In this document: piece by piece, positions 1-6,844 of the stretch
Position numbering within the stretch: position 1 is the stretch's first letter
Layout of the letters: each line of letters starts with the position of its first letter
Assembly: GCF_000143415.4 (NCBI RefSeq)
Contig: NW_003314677.1
Location: 1 to 6,844, forward strand
Length of the DNA stretch: 6,844 nt
Direction: 5' to 3'
Origin: Selaginella moellendorffii
Lineage: Eukaryota; Plantae; Lycopodiophyta
Translations under genes and position numbers: made by a program
Notes under the pieces: model-generated
The model's input: the letters and a program-made list of their open reading frames with translations, nothing else
Told to the model about the DNA's origin: nothing
The model's database searches: none

Positions 1-839
1 TGCGCCACAGCTTGAAGAAGCTGCCTAAACGCATCTGCAGGTGGTGACTCACCGCCGAGGAGCACCGACTGGAGCGAGCGGCCACAAAACTCCATGACAA
101 TGTACACTTTCGACTTGCCCGGCTCGCCTTCCTCCTTCCACATGTCGAAGTATTTGACTATGTTGGGGTGTTCGCAGCGCTGGAGCATCTCTCCCTCCTT
201 GAAGACGAGCGCGACATCCTGGTCTCTGGACTTCGTTGCTGTGCGAACCTTGATGACTTTGATGGCGTAGATTTGTTCGTCCTCCTTGCTACGGCACTTG
301 TATACTTTCCCGGACGCCCCCTGGCCAACACAAGCGAGCACTTCGTAGCTGCTGCAGAAGCGGCCTGGACAAGAGAGACAAGGGGCCACTCAGAAGCGAA
401 AAGATGCCAAAGAGACAAATTATTGTATCCACCTGCTGCTGCAACTGGAGTCTCCCCTCCCTTTTGGATCGATTCCACGATCCCGGTCACAACATTCGCC
501 GAGAGCATCTTGAATCTCTCCAAGCGTTGTGCCATTGCGAGGAATTGCCGAACATATTCTGCAAGTCATGAATCAAACCAGCAAAGAGTCGTGTCAGCCA
601 ACAAAAGGAATTCCTCGTACCAGCGTCAGGAGCAGCCTGCAACGCGGATGCATCATGATCAGTTTCTCCTGCTCCTGCTTCAACGAGGATCTTCATCAGA
701 CAAGTGCAGATGTTTCAAGTTTTGACCAACCTGATCGAGCTCGGTTAATCGGATCCAGTGGGCGGGTCCTTTCGAGCATGACGTCGGATCGCTTCTGAGT
801 GTGTAGTTTCTTCGGACCAGCAGCTCTCTTCCTCTCCAT
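1..839 (-). CDS. Spliced Ser/Thr protein kinase, GCN2/eIF2-alpha-kinase-like catalytic domain, 3' part outside window; coding exons 839-731, 674-621, 558-433, 364-<1
   Basis: Manual translation of minus strand 364->1 gives GRFCSSYEVLACVGQGASGKVYKCRSKEDEQIYAIKVIK...KEGEMLQRCEHPNIVKYFDMWKEE...VYIVMEFCGRSLQSVL...FRQLLQAVA (Gly loop, AIK lysine, alphaC Glu, HPNIV, hinge, alphaE). Three GT-AG introns (730-675, 56 bp; 620-559, 62 bp; 432-365, 68 bp), all phase 1, join in one frame to an ATG at 839 in CCACCATGG context with an in-frame TGA five codons upstream. Kinase identity is high confidence; upstream exon model and subfamily are less certain. Confidence 0.85.
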
Positions 840-876
840 GGTGGACTCTGGTCAGTGTTAACATTGTGAGTCGTTG

Positions 877-1046
877 CTGAAAGCACAAAAGAGATTGAGG
901 AGTCGTTACTGCACTTATCCAACGGCTGGAGCCTAGAATGCGCACATCAGCTGTCCGTCAATGGATTCACAACAAACTTGCTACAATTGCATTCTCACCT
1001 CCTTCTGCCTCGCCAACAGTAGGCTGCAAACCAGCAGCGCACTCAC
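877..1046 (-). other. Probable 5'-UTR intron(s) of the kinase gene
   Basis: Minus-strand donor-like sites GAG|GTGAGT (1046) and GAG|GTGAGA (998); acceptor-like sites TTCTAG| (933) and TTTTGTGCTTTCAG| (877). Exact pairing cannot be determined. Confidence 0.45.
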
Positions 1047-1258
1047 CTCTGCCCTTGCCAGATGATCACGGAGGCTCTAGATTTGGAATCTAAGCTGCAT
1101 TGAGGATCCGACGCGCTCCTCCGGCTCCCTTGCCAATAGTAGGGTACAAGAATACAAAAGGCCACATCGGATAGAGTTTAGGGCAGACGTGGCACCTTTG
1201 GTCACCTTTTGTGGCCCTTCTTCATTTCCACGGAATACGAGTCATTTTTTAGGGTATC
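1047..1258. promoter_or_regulatory. Putative short bidirectional promoter region between kinase and phosphatase; contains ABRE/G-box-like ACGTGGC at 1187-1193
   Basis: Lies between divergent genes; motif seen directly, but a single 7-mer is weak evidence; no clear TATA box. Confidence 0.4.
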
Positions 1259-1846
1259 ATGAAGAAGACACTCATTCTCGATCTAGACAATACACTGGTA
1301 TACGCTCATAAGGATCTCGTCTCTTCTGTAGATTTCAGCATGGAATTCAACGATGATGCACCACTCCACATCATGAAGAGACCAGGCGTAGATGAATTTC
1401 TGGGGAAGGTTTCAAAAGTGTACAATATCGTGGTGTTTAGTGCCGCCCAGGAGAAGTATGTCAACCTTGTGGTTGACCATCTGGATCCTACTGGGGGGCT
1501 TGTGTCGAGGAGGCTACATGGTGGCAATTGCGTTGTTCTAAAGGACGGGACGAAAGTCAAGAATCTTGACCATGTAGGGTTTCGGGATTTCAAGCGGGTG
1601 GTGGCACTGGATGACATTATTGACTTCTACCAAGGTCATCAAGAGAGCGTGGTGGTGGCTCCAAAGTTTGAGGGGTCAAAGGATGACCACTTCTTGGCAG
1701 ATGTAACCCCATTCCTTCTTGCGCTGTCAAAGTGTGTGGATTTTACCAAAGTTAACCATCGCTGGAATATTGGACAATGTGTGGAGAAGCAAGGCAAATT
1801 GTACGTCCTAGATTCATTCGATGATGAATGGGTTGTTTTTAACTGA
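1259..1846 (+). CDS. FCP1/SCP-family (NIF domain) CTD small phosphatase-like HAD phosphatase, 195 aa, intronless
   Basis: KKTLILDLDNTLV (DxDxT motif I), KRPGVDEFL, IVVFSAA (motif II), KYVNLVVDHLDP, VKNL (motif III Lys), RVVALDD (motif IV), F.G.KDD.FL....PFL..L; uninterrupted ORF; AATAAA at 1861-1866. Confidence 0.93.
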   Translation: MKKTLILDLDNTLVYAHKDLVSSVDFSMEFNDDAPLHIMKRPGVDEFLGKVSKVYNIVVFSAAQEKYVNLVVDHLDPTGGLVSRRLHGGNCVVLKDGTKVKNLDHVGFRDFKRVVALDDIIDFYQGHQESVVVAPKFEGSKDDHFLADVTPFLLALSKCVDFTKVNHRWNIGQCVEKQGKLYVLDSFDDEWVVFN

Positions 1847-1860
1847 TTATGTTATTTTGT

Positions 1861-1866
1861 AATAAA
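1861..1866 (+). terminator. Candidate polyadenylation signal AATAAA
   Basis: Exact hexamer 14 nt after the phosphatase stop codon in an AT-rich tract. Confidence 0.4.
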
Positions 1867-2257
1867 TGTTATAATTTTTCTGCCAAAGTGTAGTTTATGC
1901 AAATGAATCTTAGTGAACTTTTGAGCTCAGGATTTCCTACATGTCTCATGTAAAACAAAATGGCAAAACAAGAAAAACAGCACACCAAATTTTCAAGCTC
2001 TTTTGCCAAGGAAATCCCCTTTACATTGAGAGCCCACAGCTTTGCAACACCCCATGAACACCAATAGGAGCACGTGCCCACCTCAAACAACAAGCGAGAC
2101 TTCAAAAAGGACATCACTGATCCAACATTTGATGCCGGAGGATAAGATGCTTAGAAGACTGATTGCTTCTGAGTTCTTTTATGTCTGTTGTTTAGTGCCT
2201 ATGTGAAGCTATTGACAAAAATGTGATGATCCATATGAAGCTCTTCACAGGATCATG

Positions 2258-2314
<57 letters not shown>
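2258..2314. repeat. (GA)n microsatellite, (GA)11 AA (GA)16 G
   Basis: Directly visible; one interruption at 2280. Confidence 0.99.
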
Positions 2315-2316
<2 letters not shown>

Positions 2317-2324
2317 TCTTTGCC

Positions 2325-3284
2325 ATGACATCCAGCGAAGTAGCAAGAGGAGTGATCGCGGTGCCTCCTGCAGGCATCTCCACGCCAAATCGCGACTCTT
2401 CTGCGCCAATGTGGTGATTCCAAGTCCCTCCTGCGAGGGAAGCTCTTGCACCGCCGCCTGGCCGCCACCCTCGACCTACGCCACCACCCCTTGTTCAGCA
2501 ATCTCCTCATCCTCATGTATGGCAAGTGCTCCAGCCTCCCAGACGCATGGTCCGTCTTCCACGATCTCGTCCACAAGAACGCCTTCTCCTGTAACATCAT
2601 GATCTCGACGCTCTGCGCAAACGGCCAGAGCGCGCAAGCGATTCATCTCTTCCTCGCCCTCGCCAGCGATTCAGTCGTCCGCCCCACCCACGTCTCGTTC
2701 GTCGCCGCGCTCGCCGCCTGCGCCAATTGCCCCGATCTCCAGTCGGGCATCCGGATCCACGCCCAGATCATCGCCGTGCCACCCGCGATCGCGAGCAATC
2801 CAGTCGTGTGCTGTGCCCTCTTAACCATGTATGGGAAATGCGGCAGCCTGGCAGACGCGCGGAAGGTCTTTGATGACATGCCGCGCAAGACGATAGTTGC
2901 CTGGAGCGCGATGCTGGCTGCTTGCACCAGAAATCCCGATCAGGGCGGGCTCCCCGCTGCGATCGAGCTCTATCGCCAGCTCCGGGATGCCGGCATCGGC
3001 GCGGACTGGAACACTGCAATTGCCGCAAATGCCCATAATGGGCAGTTTAGAGCGGCGATTGCGCTGCTGTGGAAGTTGGATCTGGAAGGGATCGGGCCTG
3101 ATATGGTGACGCTGACTGAGATCCTGGCAGCGTGTTCTTGGAAGCAGGATAAAGCACAGGGTATAAAGATCCACGGAGCGTACTTGCTCGTGTGGTTGGG
3201 AGCGTAATGTTGTCGCTGGAACCTCTATCGTCAACATGTATGGAAAGTGTGGCAGAATCAAGGAAGCATAAGGAAGCAAGAATC
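2325..3284 (+). pseudogene. PLS-class pentatricopeptide repeat (PPR) gene, disrupted and 3'-truncated
   Basis: Frame open 2356-3207: IATLLRQCGDSKSLLRGKLLH (L), NLLILMYGKCSSLPDAWSVF (S), NIMISTLCANGQSAQAIHLF (P), SFVAALAAC...GIRIH (L), ALLTMYGKCGSLADARKVFDDM (S), AWSAMLAAC (P), WNTAIAANAHNG...DLEGIGPD (P), VTLTEILAAC...GIKIH (L). After a +1 shift at about 3175 it continues ERTCSCGWERNVVAGTSIVNMYGKCGRIKEA* (S; stop 3269-3271). The likely ATG (2325) is also out of frame by one base near 2364. No E/DYW domain. Confidence 0.88.
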
Positions 3285-3500
3285 TAAAATTATTTTTTGT
3301 TTATCATGGCCTTTATAAAGCAAATTTATTCATATTTTATATTCCTTTATTTATATGTTGTTATATTCCATGTAGTTTCAATTTGAACCACTTGCTTTTG
3401 TATATAAATTAGAGTTTTTGGGATAATTGATATACACATTTTATGTATTCCCTATCCATATTCCATGCACTCACATTATTTTATATTCTGTGCACTCACA
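3285..3500 (+). repeat. Putative 5' LTR (3' end defined, 5' end uncertain or truncated)
   Basis: Ends in ...CTCACA one base before the TGG of the PBS; partner LTR is not in the window. Confidence 0.6.
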
Positions 3501-3501
3501 T

Positions 3502-3519
3502 TGGTGGAGGTGAGGGGCA
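3502..3519 (+). promoter_or_regulatory. Primer binding site, tRNA-Ala type (TGGTGGAGGTGAGGGGCA)
   Basis: Starts TGG 1 nt after the LTR-terminal CA; 15/18 match to TGGTGGAGATGCGGGGTA, the complement of the plant tRNA-Ala 3' end as recalled from memory. Confidence 0.75.
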
Positions 3520-3553
3520 CCTTTGATTATTCTTGAAAAGTGCTTAAATTTGA

Positions 3554-3664
3554 GATTTTGGTTTAGATTTAGCTTTTGCATTGTCTAAATTTAGCTTTTT
3601 CCATTTCTTTCTTTTATTCTTTCTTTTTGGGATTTTGGTTTAGATCTAGCTTTTGTATTATCTA
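3554..3664 (+). repeat. 34-bp direct repeat pair (3554-3587, 3631-3664) in the retroelement 5' leader
   Basis: gattttggtttagatttagcttttgcattgtcta vs gattttggtttagatctagcttttgtattatcta, 31/34 identical. Confidence 0.85.
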
Positions 3665-3730
3665 TATCTCCCTTTCCTTCTAGCTTTTTTTTATTGCATT
3701 TCTTTTGCTCTTTCTTTTTCATTCATCTTT

Positions 3731-4650
3731 ATGGTAGAGCAATAGTCTCCTCCTCCTTTAACTTTGGAGTAGCATTTTGTACAATTGCTTAATGCTATGT
3801 GATTGTAGTTGAACAACCAAACTCAGTTGATGGTAGTATTCATAACACATGGTACAACTCTTATTGCTCTTGGTGCCAATCCTCATGTTCAACTAGAGTT
3901 CTTTTATGGGAATCTTTAGGGACAATGTGTACTATTGGTTCAATCACTTTATAGTGATTGCCATATATCATTCTTGGGATGATACTCGATGTTTGTGTGA
4001 GTTTCCCACATGTTTCCAAGGGATAGCGCTGTAGTGGTATAATAGTTTGAATGTAGCTATTTGTGGGGATTAGAGTATTCTTCGAGACGTCTTCAAACAC
4101 ACATTTGGATATGTCAACAATTGTGATAATACTTTCCAACAATTGCATCGTCTTTGTTAAGGACCATCTAAGTCGATGATGCAATTTAGCATTTGTTTTC
4201 GTAGCCTTTTGTTTCATGCGGAGCCAAATATGTTGGAGCAGATCAAACTAGGAATGTTGTGGCCAACACTCGTCAAAGTTTTATAGGACTTATGCATGCA
4301 CTTGCTTGAACGACCTCTAACAATGCTTTTTGTTTAGCACAACATTATGAGACATTGCTTTTTTCACTTCTCGCTACACATCTTTTAGCTCCACTTTCTG
4401 TGGGAGATGGTTTTGTTTCGATGGAGGTTGATGTTACTGCTACTCAGGTTTAAGGACAAGGGTGAGGATGTGGTCATAGTTGTGATATTCGTTACTGAGC
4501 ATGTAATGAAGTTAGTCACATTTATCAGTATTGTCAACGTTTTCCGGATTGGTAGCTTCTATTTCTTGGGTAGAGACTTTGGCATCAACAATGTCTTGTT
4601 GGTATTGTTGCAGTGAAAGGTCTAGACATCGAGATGCATCCAGGAAATGA
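3731..4650 (+). pseudogene. gag: Retrotransposon gag remnant
   Basis: From ATG 3731, reading through stops and shifts: EFFYGN/RDNVYYWFNHF..IA..HSWDD...FQGIAL*WYNSL....D*SILRDVFKHTFG...LHRLC*GPSKSM..F..FRSL (Retrotrans_gag-like); decayed Gly/Arg-rich tract 4451-4490; degenerate zinc knuckle CWYC...H from 4597. Confidence 0.8.
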
Positions 4651-4759
4651 GGAGTCGTGCAAGTAATGGAGGGACCTTGCACGAATAAGTCAATGACCCC
4701 TCCATCTTCCTTTTGGAAGTATCATCAAAAGGTTCATTCGGCATCAGTTCATCTAGTGT

Positions 4760-5046
4760 TTGCTTTCCAAGCTTATTTTTATAACAAAAGGTCTTTTATT
4801 ATTCTCTTTGTATCGATTCATACATGTTCAAGTTTATCTTCTATTATTCGACTTGTTACCATATGTTACCACCTACATTTGTGTCATGCGGCAGAGTCAA
4901 TTTTCATTCTTTATGGCAACGGCCATACATATGCATATGCACGGGATGAAGTGAACCTAGTTGTGTATATAGGTGATCTTGAATTTGGACTGCAGTCATT
5001 GCTAGTGGTGCCGAGTTAAGCTTTTGACTTCATCCTTGGTATGGGC
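4760..5046 (+). pseudogene. Retrotransposon aspartic protease remnant
   Basis: Degenerate catalytic region CIDS (Asp codon 4815-4817), flap-like YGNG, V.L.V.IG, and LVVPS*AFDFILGMG (D.ILG motif). Confidence 0.7.
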
Positions 5047-5247
5047 GCAATCATGCTAAATGTGACTTTGAGGCTACTTCCCCTTGTCTCATACTTCCTT
5101 ATATTTTATCCATTCCTTTCACTTCGAAACATGTTTGTCCCTTTGCTTCTACTTCTACTTTCATTACTTTTGTCTCCCCATTATTTCCTTTTATGTTTCC
5201 GTTTTGTTCTGCTTTTCCATTTTTCAATCCCTCGGTTGACAAGCTCA

Positions 5248-5945
5248 TGAAGGAGTATGCCAATCTCTTTGAGTTTCACCTATTGTCTGGGCCCAAGATT
5301 GCTATATATCATCTGATTCCAACTAGGGATACTCATCCCATCAAAGTTTCTGTTCATCATCAATCACCTAAAGAGATCAAGATTTTACATGCAAATGTCA
5401 AGGAGATGTTGGAAAAGGGTGTTATTCAAAAGTCACGGAGTCCTTGGGCATATGAACCTCATCTTGTGACGAAGCCTAATGCGAATATTCATTTCTACAT
5501 CGATTATCATTCGTTAAACAAAATGACAATTTTAGATGTGTATCCTCTTCCTCACCTGTTGATTTCTTAGATCATCTAAAAAGAAGTTGTTAGTTCACTA
5601 AGTTAGATCTTTCTTCTGGGTACTGGCAAATACTAATGGGCGAAGAAGATATTCCTAAGAATACTTTTTATACACCATTTAGTTTGTATGAGGTTTTGGT
5701 GATTCTGTTTGGTTTGAACAATGGTTTAGCATTTTTCCAACAAATGATGGATGGGGTTCTTTGTGATATGCTAGAGGTGATTACTTACTTCATTAGTGAT
5801 GTTTTGATCCACTCGAAGGGGATGTGGGAGGAATATATGTTTGTAAAGTGTTAAATCAATTATGGGAAGTTGGTTTAAAGTTGAAGTGGTCGAAGTGTGT
5901 ATTTGACTCTAATGACACGACTTATCTTGAGTACCGTATCACATT
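5248..5945 (+). pseudogene. pol: Reverse transcriptase remnant (Ty3/gypsy)
   Basis: KEMLEKGVIQKSRSPWA, LVTKP, FYIDYHSLNKMT..DVYPLP, FTKLDLSSGYWQI, F.TPF.LYE, FGLNN....FQQMMD, FISDVLIHS (YxDD site mutated, 5789-5800), GLKLKWSKCVF...YL; frameshifts near 5555 and 5840. Confidence 0.93.
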
Positions 5946-5959
5946 GCACTGTTGTAAGT

Positions 5960-6447
5960 GTTGTCGAAGTCATCAACATCATCTTTCATCTAGTTTGTGG
6001 ATTATGAGTAGGCATTCATGGATTTCAAAAAGCTATTGATGACTCTTCTGGTTTTGGCGTATCCTAACTACACTTGACCTTTCATTTTGCACATAAATGC
6101 TTTTGATATTGGTCTTGGAGGTGTATTGATGCAAAAGAGCCTGAGTGTGTTTGGTTAGCGCCATCCCATTGCATATATAAGCCGTATATTACAACCAGCA
6201 GAAAAAAACTACTTCACAACAGAGAAAGAATATTTAGTAACAATCTAGGGTTTTGAAAAACTTCACACATATCTACATGGTTCTTGGATATTATTGGAAG
6301 GTGATTATGCTACCATTACTTCATTATTGAAATAAAAAAACTTGATTGGTCATATGACTCAGTGGGCTTTGAAGCTTTAGATATATAATTTTAATAATGT
6401 TCATCACCCAGGGAGTTCTATGGCTGATGCTAATGCTTTTTCTCGAG
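5960..6447 (+). pseudogene. pol: RT connection end and RNase H remnant
   Basis: AFMDFK/LLMT..VLAYPNYT*PFILHINAFDIGLGGVLMQ, PIAYISRILQPAEKNYFTTEKE, YLHG, WALKL*.YNF..VH.PG...ADANAFSR. Confidence 0.92.
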
Positions 6448-6539
6448 CTCCTCTTCCTTATTTGCCCTTTTTTCATATTTCTAACGAGTGTGTTGTTCTA
6501 GCATCTGTGGATTTTCTAGACAAGGATTCTGTGTTGTTA

Positions 6540-6587
6540 GCAGTTGTTGTATTTAATGTTCAAGCAGTTGTTGTATTTAATGTTCAA
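6540..6587 (+). repeat. Perfect 24-bp tandem duplication (AVVVFNVQ x2)
   Basis: gcagttgttgtatttaatgttcaa at 6540-6563 and 6564-6587. Confidence 0.97.
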
Positions 6588-6749
6588 TGTCCACAAGGTG
6601 TAAAACAGAATTTACCTTCTCTAGATGAGGTTTGTGAAGCTCAAAAGATTGAGTCATGGATTTGAAGGCTTCATAATGGGTTTAAAAATTCTACATCACT
6701 TGCTGATGACTTGTCACTCTGGCATTTACTTTTTTAATATTTCTTTGGA

Positions 6750-6844
6750 AACAACCTTCTTTATTTTATGGGTACAAATCCTTATGATCATTTATAGTTG
6801 GTAGTGCCTTCAATCTTTATTTCATGGTTCCTCCATGCCTACCA
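6750..6844 (+). pseudogene. Start of integrase N-terminal (zinc-binding) region
   Basis: NNLLYF......L*LVVPSIFISWFLHAY(H) matches the LLY...LVVP.....IL..xH pattern leading into the gypsy integrase HHCC domain. Confidence 0.6.

Follow-up and report, generated by a model that had tools for sequence, protein, structure and literature searches.

We report here that a protein kinase gene and a small phosphatase gene lie next to each other, on opposite strands, in a 6,844-nucleotide stretch of the genome of the lycophyte Selaginella moellendorffii (contig NW_003314677.1, positions 1 to 6,844 of the forward strand; the whole stretch is called the window below), and that this adjacency appears to be inherited. 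The two genes, named KIN1 and NIF1, have their start codons 420 bp apart (839 on the minus strand and 1259 on the plus strand). Since the only close paralogue of KIN1 (KIN2) also lies beside a small NIF phosphatase, we infer that the linkage is old, and that the two genes are neighbours by descent from an older kinase-phosphatase pair and not by chance. The reading that we favour, at a probability of about 0.5, is that an old pair was inherited in which NIF1 acts in the kinase pathway as an antagonist or regulator that is expressed conditionally, and not as an obligate partner.

The pair and its paralogue

The features that make up the pair are as follows.

1..364, minus strand: kinase exon 4, partial, codons 98-218, N-lobe (Pfam Pkinase 1.8e-20; spliced model; RNA junction 364 to 433)
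433..558, minus strand: kinase exon 3, N-terminal extension (spliced model; RNA junctions 364 to 433 and 558 to 621)
621..677 in the model, 674-621 in the RNA, minus strand: kinase exon 2 (spliced model and RNA reads)
731..847, minus strand: kinase exon 1, with the ATG at 839 and 8 nt of 5' untranslated region (UTR) (spliced model and RNA)
848..1100, minus strand: spliced kinase 5'UTR (RNA junctions; depth drops past about 1100)
1101..1258, no strand: divergent intergenic region of about 160 bp, from the 5' end of the kinase transcript to the phosphatase ATG (depth 0.25-0.83 in 1101-1210)
1259..1846, plus strand: SCP/NIF-type HAD phosphatase gene (NIF1), intronless, 195 aa (Pfam NIF 1.7e-36; match to SCP1, 1TA0, 1e-19)
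1219..2006, plus strand: phosphatase duplication module, made up of 40 bp of 5' flank, the open reading frame (ORF) and 160 bp of 3' flank (blastn break points; junction sequence)

An earlier note on this DNA, made from its sequence, had described an intact, intronless HAD phosphatase starting at 1259 and a kinase starting divergently about 420 bp away, at 839. Both descriptions held, and the 195-aa phosphatase ORF has all four HAD motifs intact.

The second pair is on GL377674.1. NIF2 is also intronless (213 aa, with the motif DLDGTL; Pfam NIF 1.7e-35), and it precedes KIN2 in tandem, on the same strand, with a gap of 0.6-1.6 kb depending on the gene model. The NIF2-KIN2 unit recurs at intervals of 12.9 kb, and the NIF copies of the repeats are identical. 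We observed that NIF1 and NIF2 are 38% identical, which is near the 39% identity of KIN1 and KIN2. In the phosphatase tree there were two strongly supported Selaginella groups (NIF1 with P0003 and P0004, and NIF2 with P0280 and P0281), and these united with 91/90 support after the long-branch outgroups were removed.

The earlier note had named chance adjacency as its own alternative. As KIN2 also adjoins a small NIF phosphatase, this is unlikely. For chance to have placed both kinases of a two-gene family next to phosphatases from one four-locus clade is in fact very unlikely (by a rough estimate about 1e-6 or less for ~22,000 genes). In the history that we propose as the simplest, an ancestral pair of neighbouring kinase and phosphatase genes would have been duplicated into two pairs, the orientation would have flipped in one of them, and later duplications would have copied the phosphatase alone. 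A literature search gave no report of this pair, of SCP-like phosphatases in Selaginella or of head-to-head kinase-phosphatase pairs in plants.

The predicted kinase and phosphatase

The coding exons of KIN1 in the window are 839-731, 677-621, 558-433 and 364-1, with three introns between them that were all confirmed by RNA reads. The gene is cut by the window edge at base 1, after codon 218 of 358 and ahead of the catalytic loop, and the window holds only the N-terminal extension and the N-lobe. The N-lobe, in exon 4, carries the glycine loop (GQGASG), the AIK lysine and the alpha-C Glu. The spliced kinase had been called apparently intact; the start at 839 and the three introns were borne out, but not the intactness, which we infer for the window copy only from near-identical copies. 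In these copies (P0008) the full KIN1 has 358 aa and 7 exons, with introns of 47-68 nt.

At the second exon of KIN1 we observed a tandem acceptor (AAGCAG/G, window 674-680). All RNA reads join exon 1 to 674 (skipping 56 nt, not the model's 53), i.e. to an acceptor 3 nt further downstream than that of the database model, which uses 677. The expressed KIN1 would therefore be 357 aa, with one residue of 'SAGAGE' removed.

Pfam recognized a kinase domain only in the full KIN1, and no RWD, pseudokinase, HisRS-like, double-stranded-RNA-binding, haem or luminal domain was detected in its 358 aa. The catalytic loop reads HRDIAPHN, with Ala where the HRDLKPxN of Ser/Thr kinases has Lys. The P+1 loop has GR and not GT, and APE is replaced by SPQ. 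KIN1 does have the glycine loop, the AIK lysine, the alpha-C glutamate and DFG.

We compared the full KIN1 with solved structures, and the matches were HRI at 106.8, PERK at 101, GCN2 at 95.7 and NEK1 at 95.2 bits, a narrow margin over NEK1. The N-lobe alone was unclassifiable (CDPK, HRI, PERK, STE20 and NEK matches were mixed), and a feature search in a protein atlas brought up generic kinase clusters only. When 1.84 billion cluster representatives were searched exhaustively with HMMER, the best single-domain match was KIN2 (P0062), with 39% identity, and nothing above 40% identity was found outside KIN1's own cluster. KIN2 is likewise an S. moellendorffii protein. RefSeq lists it under 'eukaryotic translation initiation factor 2-alpha kinase' and, in a longer model with an N-terminal Fumble/pantothenate-kinase-like domain (Pfam 2.6e-63; L009 10001-12471, on GL377674.1), under 'wee1-like protein kinase 2'. 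The top 17 PDB matches of KIN2 were all eIF2-alpha kinases (GCN2 119, HRI 115 and PERK 112, versus 91 bits for Myt1). KIN1 and KIN2 were sisters in a tree of the 45 best kinase domains, with 95 in the Shimodaira-Hasegawa-like approximate likelihood ratio test (SH-aLRT), and the adjoining clade was PERK/PKR-like through its member P0059 (SH-aLRT 94, not starred). The two genes have one intron in common by position and phase, in the DFGLA codon.

The loop of KIN2 reads HRDIAPKN. Among 292 loops from the 150 best matches, Ala at the position of the loop lysine was seen in three (KIN1, KIN2 and one other domain), and the odd loop is therefore a family trait rather than a sign of decay. From these results, KIN1 is predicted to be a lineage-specific, stand-alone kinase with a catalytic domain of the PEK (eIF2-alpha-kinase) type; it is closest to PEK, but lacks the canonical HRDLKPxN loop. 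It is not GCN2 proper, since the RWD, pseudokinase, HisRS-like and C-terminal domains are absent (Pfam). The description 'GCN2-like' was thus right for the type of kinase domain, but the GCN2 architecture is absent.

NIF1 matched the Pfam NIF profile (PF03031) with 125.7 bits, against a gathering cut-off of 21.8, over residues 3-162 and profile positions 1-159 of 160. Aligned with human SCP1, NIF1 shows the four HAD motifs as D8-x-D10-x-T12, S61, K101 and D118-D119. The segment LDLDNTL was aligned with DLDETL of SCP1 (1TA0), and motif I is invariant in the NIF alignment. The SCP1 counterparts of S61, K101 and D118-D119 are T152, K190 and D206-N207. NIF1 is predicted to be an SCP/NIF-type phosphoserine/threonine phosphatase, with all catalytic motifs present. 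Its 33-aa C-terminal tail is common only to P0004, and synonymous sites between these two are saturated (pS 0.82). In the 3' flank of the NIF1 module there is an AATAAA at 1862 and an A-rich stretch at 1953-1981.

Both genes of the pair are already annotated in RefSeq, as separate genes. NIF1 is 97% identical to the S. moellendorffii RefSeq protein 'probable phosphatase PSR2'; the exact NIF1 sequence of the window is missing from the protein collection, and hence the window copy was never annotated.

Expression, copies and competing explanations

Expression was evaluated in four RNA-seq runs: three stranded runs (X22-X24, raw reads at 97% identity or more) and run X1. KIN1 was expressed in X22-X24 at a depth of 90-250, on the expected strand, and all junctions in the window were seen. 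Its 5'UTR is spliced, with an intron at 848-909 (alternatively 848-914), a micro-exon of 17-22 nt (910/915-931), an intron at 932-997, and a first exon that runs from 998 to about 1100, where the signal stops. Of two UTR splice donors proposed earlier, the one at 998 is real (junction 931 to 998), while the one at 1046 had no supporting read. About 160 bp remain between the end of the kinase transcript (~1100) and the phosphatase ATG.

NIF1 gave a different result: the interval 1211-1980 had zero reads on either strand in X22-X24. In run X1 we found a 339-nt contig over 1259-1597 at a word depth of 3.8, versus 9.3 for the kinase contig. X1 represents RNA, because the kinase contig there is spliced. 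The NIF1 contig carries alleles of other copies (e.g. at 1349 and 1424).

These results bear on the proposal, made in the earlier note, of a co-regulated writer/eraser module, which would be under the control of a single compact bidirectional promoter. The geometry is that of a bidirectional pair, since the genes are on opposite strands and their starts are less than 1 kb apart (~1100 and 1259; the kinase transcript begins ~160 bp from the phosphatase ATG), and both genes appeared in X1. However, expression was not correlated: this was the only one of the four runs with both genes, and the depths in the other three libraries were 90-250 for the kinase and 0 for the phosphatase. The KIN2-NIF2 pair is moreover in tandem, so that a shared bidirectional promoter is not conserved. 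We consider such a module unlikely. As the kinase is abundant without NIF1 RNA, it is tolerated without NIF1, and there is no shared-promoter co-expression in the material sampled.

Within the divergent intergenic region we also observed an inverted repeat, AAAAGGCCACA ... TGTGGCCC, at 1156-1216, which flanks about 40 bp; stem-loops were also scored there by a terminator scan. The scan of this region for sigma-70 promoters and terminators was discarded, being meaningless for a plant nuclear gene.

We next describe the copies of the pair. The 2.6-kb kinase-spacer-phosphatase core is present in six copies (the window, L001 and L003-L006) with a pairwise identity of 98.3-99.7%, those outside the window being on GL377730, GL377769, GL377821, GL377612 and GL377877. 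Bases 1-2053 of the window are 98.3% identical to GL377730.1 (S. moellendorffii assembly GCA_000143415.2). The cores sit inside collinear duplications of 16-20 kb that also hold PPR and 2-oxoglutarate (2OG)-oxygenase genes, and the window holds one copy of a recently amplified S. moellendorffii chromosome segment. Some of the core copies may be two haplotypes of the assembly. As the six near-identical pairs are block duplicates, they represent one event that was copied, and not six independent retentions. An origin of the pair as a compact mobile cassette or as a retrocopy was rejected, since the duplicated units are 16-20 kb long and include unrelated genes.

Single partners are broken in two of the copies. 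In L005 (about 8170-9580) a 58-bp insertion frameshifts the kinase and the phosphatase is intact, while in L006 (7837-8423) the kinase is intact and the phosphatase is frameshifted by the loss of 1 bp (its annotation there is a 148-aa protein). Between the intact KIN1 copies there are 4 synonymous and 2 non-synonymous changes, the latter both located in the N-terminal extension (binomial p=0.028 against neutrality).

A toxin-antidote or selfish cassette, in which the kinase would stop translation and the linked phosphatase would rescue the cell, had also been suggested. The pair is indeed multi-copy and lineage-restricted, and the kinase domain is from a translation-shut-off family. However, the kinase is strongly expressed without NIF1 RNA, either partner can be broken on its own (L005 and L006), the pair was amplified by segmental duplication along with unrelated genes and not as a compact mobile unit, and the conserved lysine is absent from the catalytic loop. 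We regard this explanation as highly improbable.

Older copies show further decay. At L005 4968-6482 there is an older, decayed tandem pair, with a kinase remnant of ~77% and a phosphatase remnant of ~87% DNA identity; the 5' exons of the kinase are deleted, and the remnants are 91 bp apart. Decayed copies of the phosphatase alone adjoin an inverted PPR segment on L001, L006 and L002, and their homology extends from 40 bp upstream of the ATG to ~160 bp past the stop. These limits indicate that a module of ~790 bp (window 1219-2006) moved between contexts. At L002 10053-10456 and L001 5374-5747 the inverted PPR segment is upstream of the phosphatase, with ~400 bp of unrelated sequence in between. 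In duplication, the PPR segment and the phosphatase module behave independently of each other. With the AATAAA and the A-rich stretch of its 3' flank, the intronless NIF1 module may be an old retrocopy.

The strongest competitor of the favoured reading is that the linkage was inherited without any function. In this case the ancestral neighbours would have been copied together and would have stayed adjacent only because breaks within 0.4-1.6 kb are rare, and NIF1 would be a nearly silent and slowly decaying passenger beside a functional kinase. The silence of NIF1 in three libraries fits this explanation. So do the changes across the NIF1 copies (7 non-synonymous and 5 synonymous, p=0.096), which are indistinguishable from neutral, the frameshift in L006 together with the fact that the older NIF1-type copies are all broken, the duplication of NIF genes on their own (P0004, P0280, P0003), and the break points that the NIF module has of its own at ~1219 and ~2006. 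On the other hand, the frames and catalytic motifs are intact in both partners, in two lineages and through ~60% protein divergence, the adjacency has outlasted a change of orientation, and NIF1 RNA is present in run X1. We consider the passenger explanation a serious one, though somewhat less probable than a conditional role for NIF1.

If NIF1 does have such a role, it may remove the activating phosphates of KIN1 itself or those on a KIN1 substrate. It would be expressed conditionally, would not be obligate, and would be decaying in some of the copies. A functional kinase/eraser relation of this kind is a plausible hypothesis. The predicted complex of the KIN1 kinase domain with NIF1 had a score of 0.00 without controls, and this counts neither for nor against binding.

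Several observations weigh against a conditional role in an old pair. Apart from the absence of NIF1 reads in X22-X24, these concern constraint, expression and linkage. The NIF1 of the window has three private changes (D31N, D56N and T166N, at positions 1349, 1424 and 1755), all non-synonymous with 0 synonymous, and the ratio across the copies points to weak constraint. KIN1 may be a weak enzyme or a pseudokinase, as suggested by HRDIAPHN, GR for GT and SPQ for APE. The KIN1 reads are not assignable to one copy. At diagnostic sites most of them carry the alleles of other copies (at site 530, 91% do so and ~9% have that of the window), and the window's own kinase copy is thus at most a minor contributor to them. 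The two pairs differ in orientation, that of KIN2 and NIF2 being in tandem and that of KIN1 and NIF1 divergent. Both NIF1 and NIF2 also have nearer paralogues, P0004 (53% to NIF1) and P0280 (74.6% to NIF2), with no kinase gene up to 10 kb away. The placement of NIF1 and NIF2 in one clade is of moderate confidence, given the long stems and branches and the thin outgroup sample, and the linkage comparison covers S. moellendorffii alone.

Neighbouring sequences and comparison with known systems

Two further features lie downstream, outside the kinase-phosphatase pair.

2446..3207, plus strand: truncated PPR gene fragment, 253-aa ORF (Pfam PPR_2 2.8e-19, PPR 3.8e-16)
3375..6844, plus strand: AT-rich remains of a broken retroelement (many stop codons; sub-threshold RVT_1 match)

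A pseudogene and transposon debris alongside the pair had been noted earlier, and this agrees with the PPR fragment and the retroelement remains, with their weak RVT_1 match. The RNA depth of the PPR fragment is very low (about 1-3), and a (GA)n microsatellite at 2248-2324 precedes its ORF. By blastn, the retroelement remains match, at 77-79% identity, a collinear series of stretches at L003-L005. Gene models at other copies join the phosphatase, the PPR piece and a 2OG-oxygenase (P0006, 347 aa). This fusion is probably an annotation artefact.

To our knowledge, no eIF2-alpha kinase other than GCN2 has been described in land plants. It is therefore of interest that a lycophyte has a second, PEK-like lineage without sensor domains, in which the catalytic loop is altered and a small SCP-type phosphatase has twice been found as the neighbouring gene. 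A 'PEK_PEK' class does exist in the plant kinase classifications of the plant kinome papers. If the phosphatase reverses the kinase, the pair would be a simple system for studying how such kinases are switched off, and one of the few eukaryotic examples of a conserved linkage between kinase and phosphatase genes. The finding is a modest one, since what the evidence shows is that the linkage is old, that the kinase is healthy and expressed, and that the phosphatase is almost silent.

KIN1 resembles the eIF2-alpha kinases in the 'Y..W.E' motif of the N-lobe, in 'NIF' past the catalytic loop and in DFGLA, and, in the alignments with HRI and PERK, in 'Y.SP' in the P+1 loop and the helix-G motif 'ER..L..VR.G'. 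It differs from them in its length of 358 aa, without sensor domains or a long kinase insert, and in having HRDIAPHN for HRDLKPxN, GR for GT and SPQ for SPE. KIN2 resembles KIN1 in sequence (39% identity), in the HRDIAP loop, in the one common intron and in the small NIF phosphatase adjoining it, and differs in its Fumble/pantothenate-kinase fusion and in the position of the phosphatase, which is upstream on the same strand and not head-to-head. NIF1, like SCP1/CTDSP and plant SSP, has the full NIF profile, the DxDxT, S/T, K and DD motifs and the 'KRPGVDEFL' segment of the insertion domain. Unlike these it is minimal (195 aa) and intronless, belongs to a long-branch clade found only in Selaginella, and is almost silent in the RNA sampled.

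A wider proposal, which we hold to be rather doubtful, is that of a lycophyte-specific module in which PEK-type kinases with the HRDIAP loop have been kept beside cognate, conditionally induced SCP-type erasers since before the split of KIN1 and KIN2, one of them being wired to a pantothenate-kinase-like sensor domain. If true, a land plant would have a second branch of kinases of the translational-stress type, and the module would be a eukaryotic counterpart of the kinase/phosphatase neighbour pairs of bacteria. The bacterial Hanks-type pairs (PrkC-PrpC, Stk1-Stp1) are co-transcribed operons with PP2C phosphatases. KIN1 and NIF1 are like them in that a Ser/Thr kinase gene persistently adjoins that of a phosphatase which may be able to reverse it. 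In contrast to the bacterial pairs, KIN1 and NIF1 are eukaryotic genes with a transcript each, NIF1 encodes a HAD-type phosphatase, and the expression of the two is discordant.

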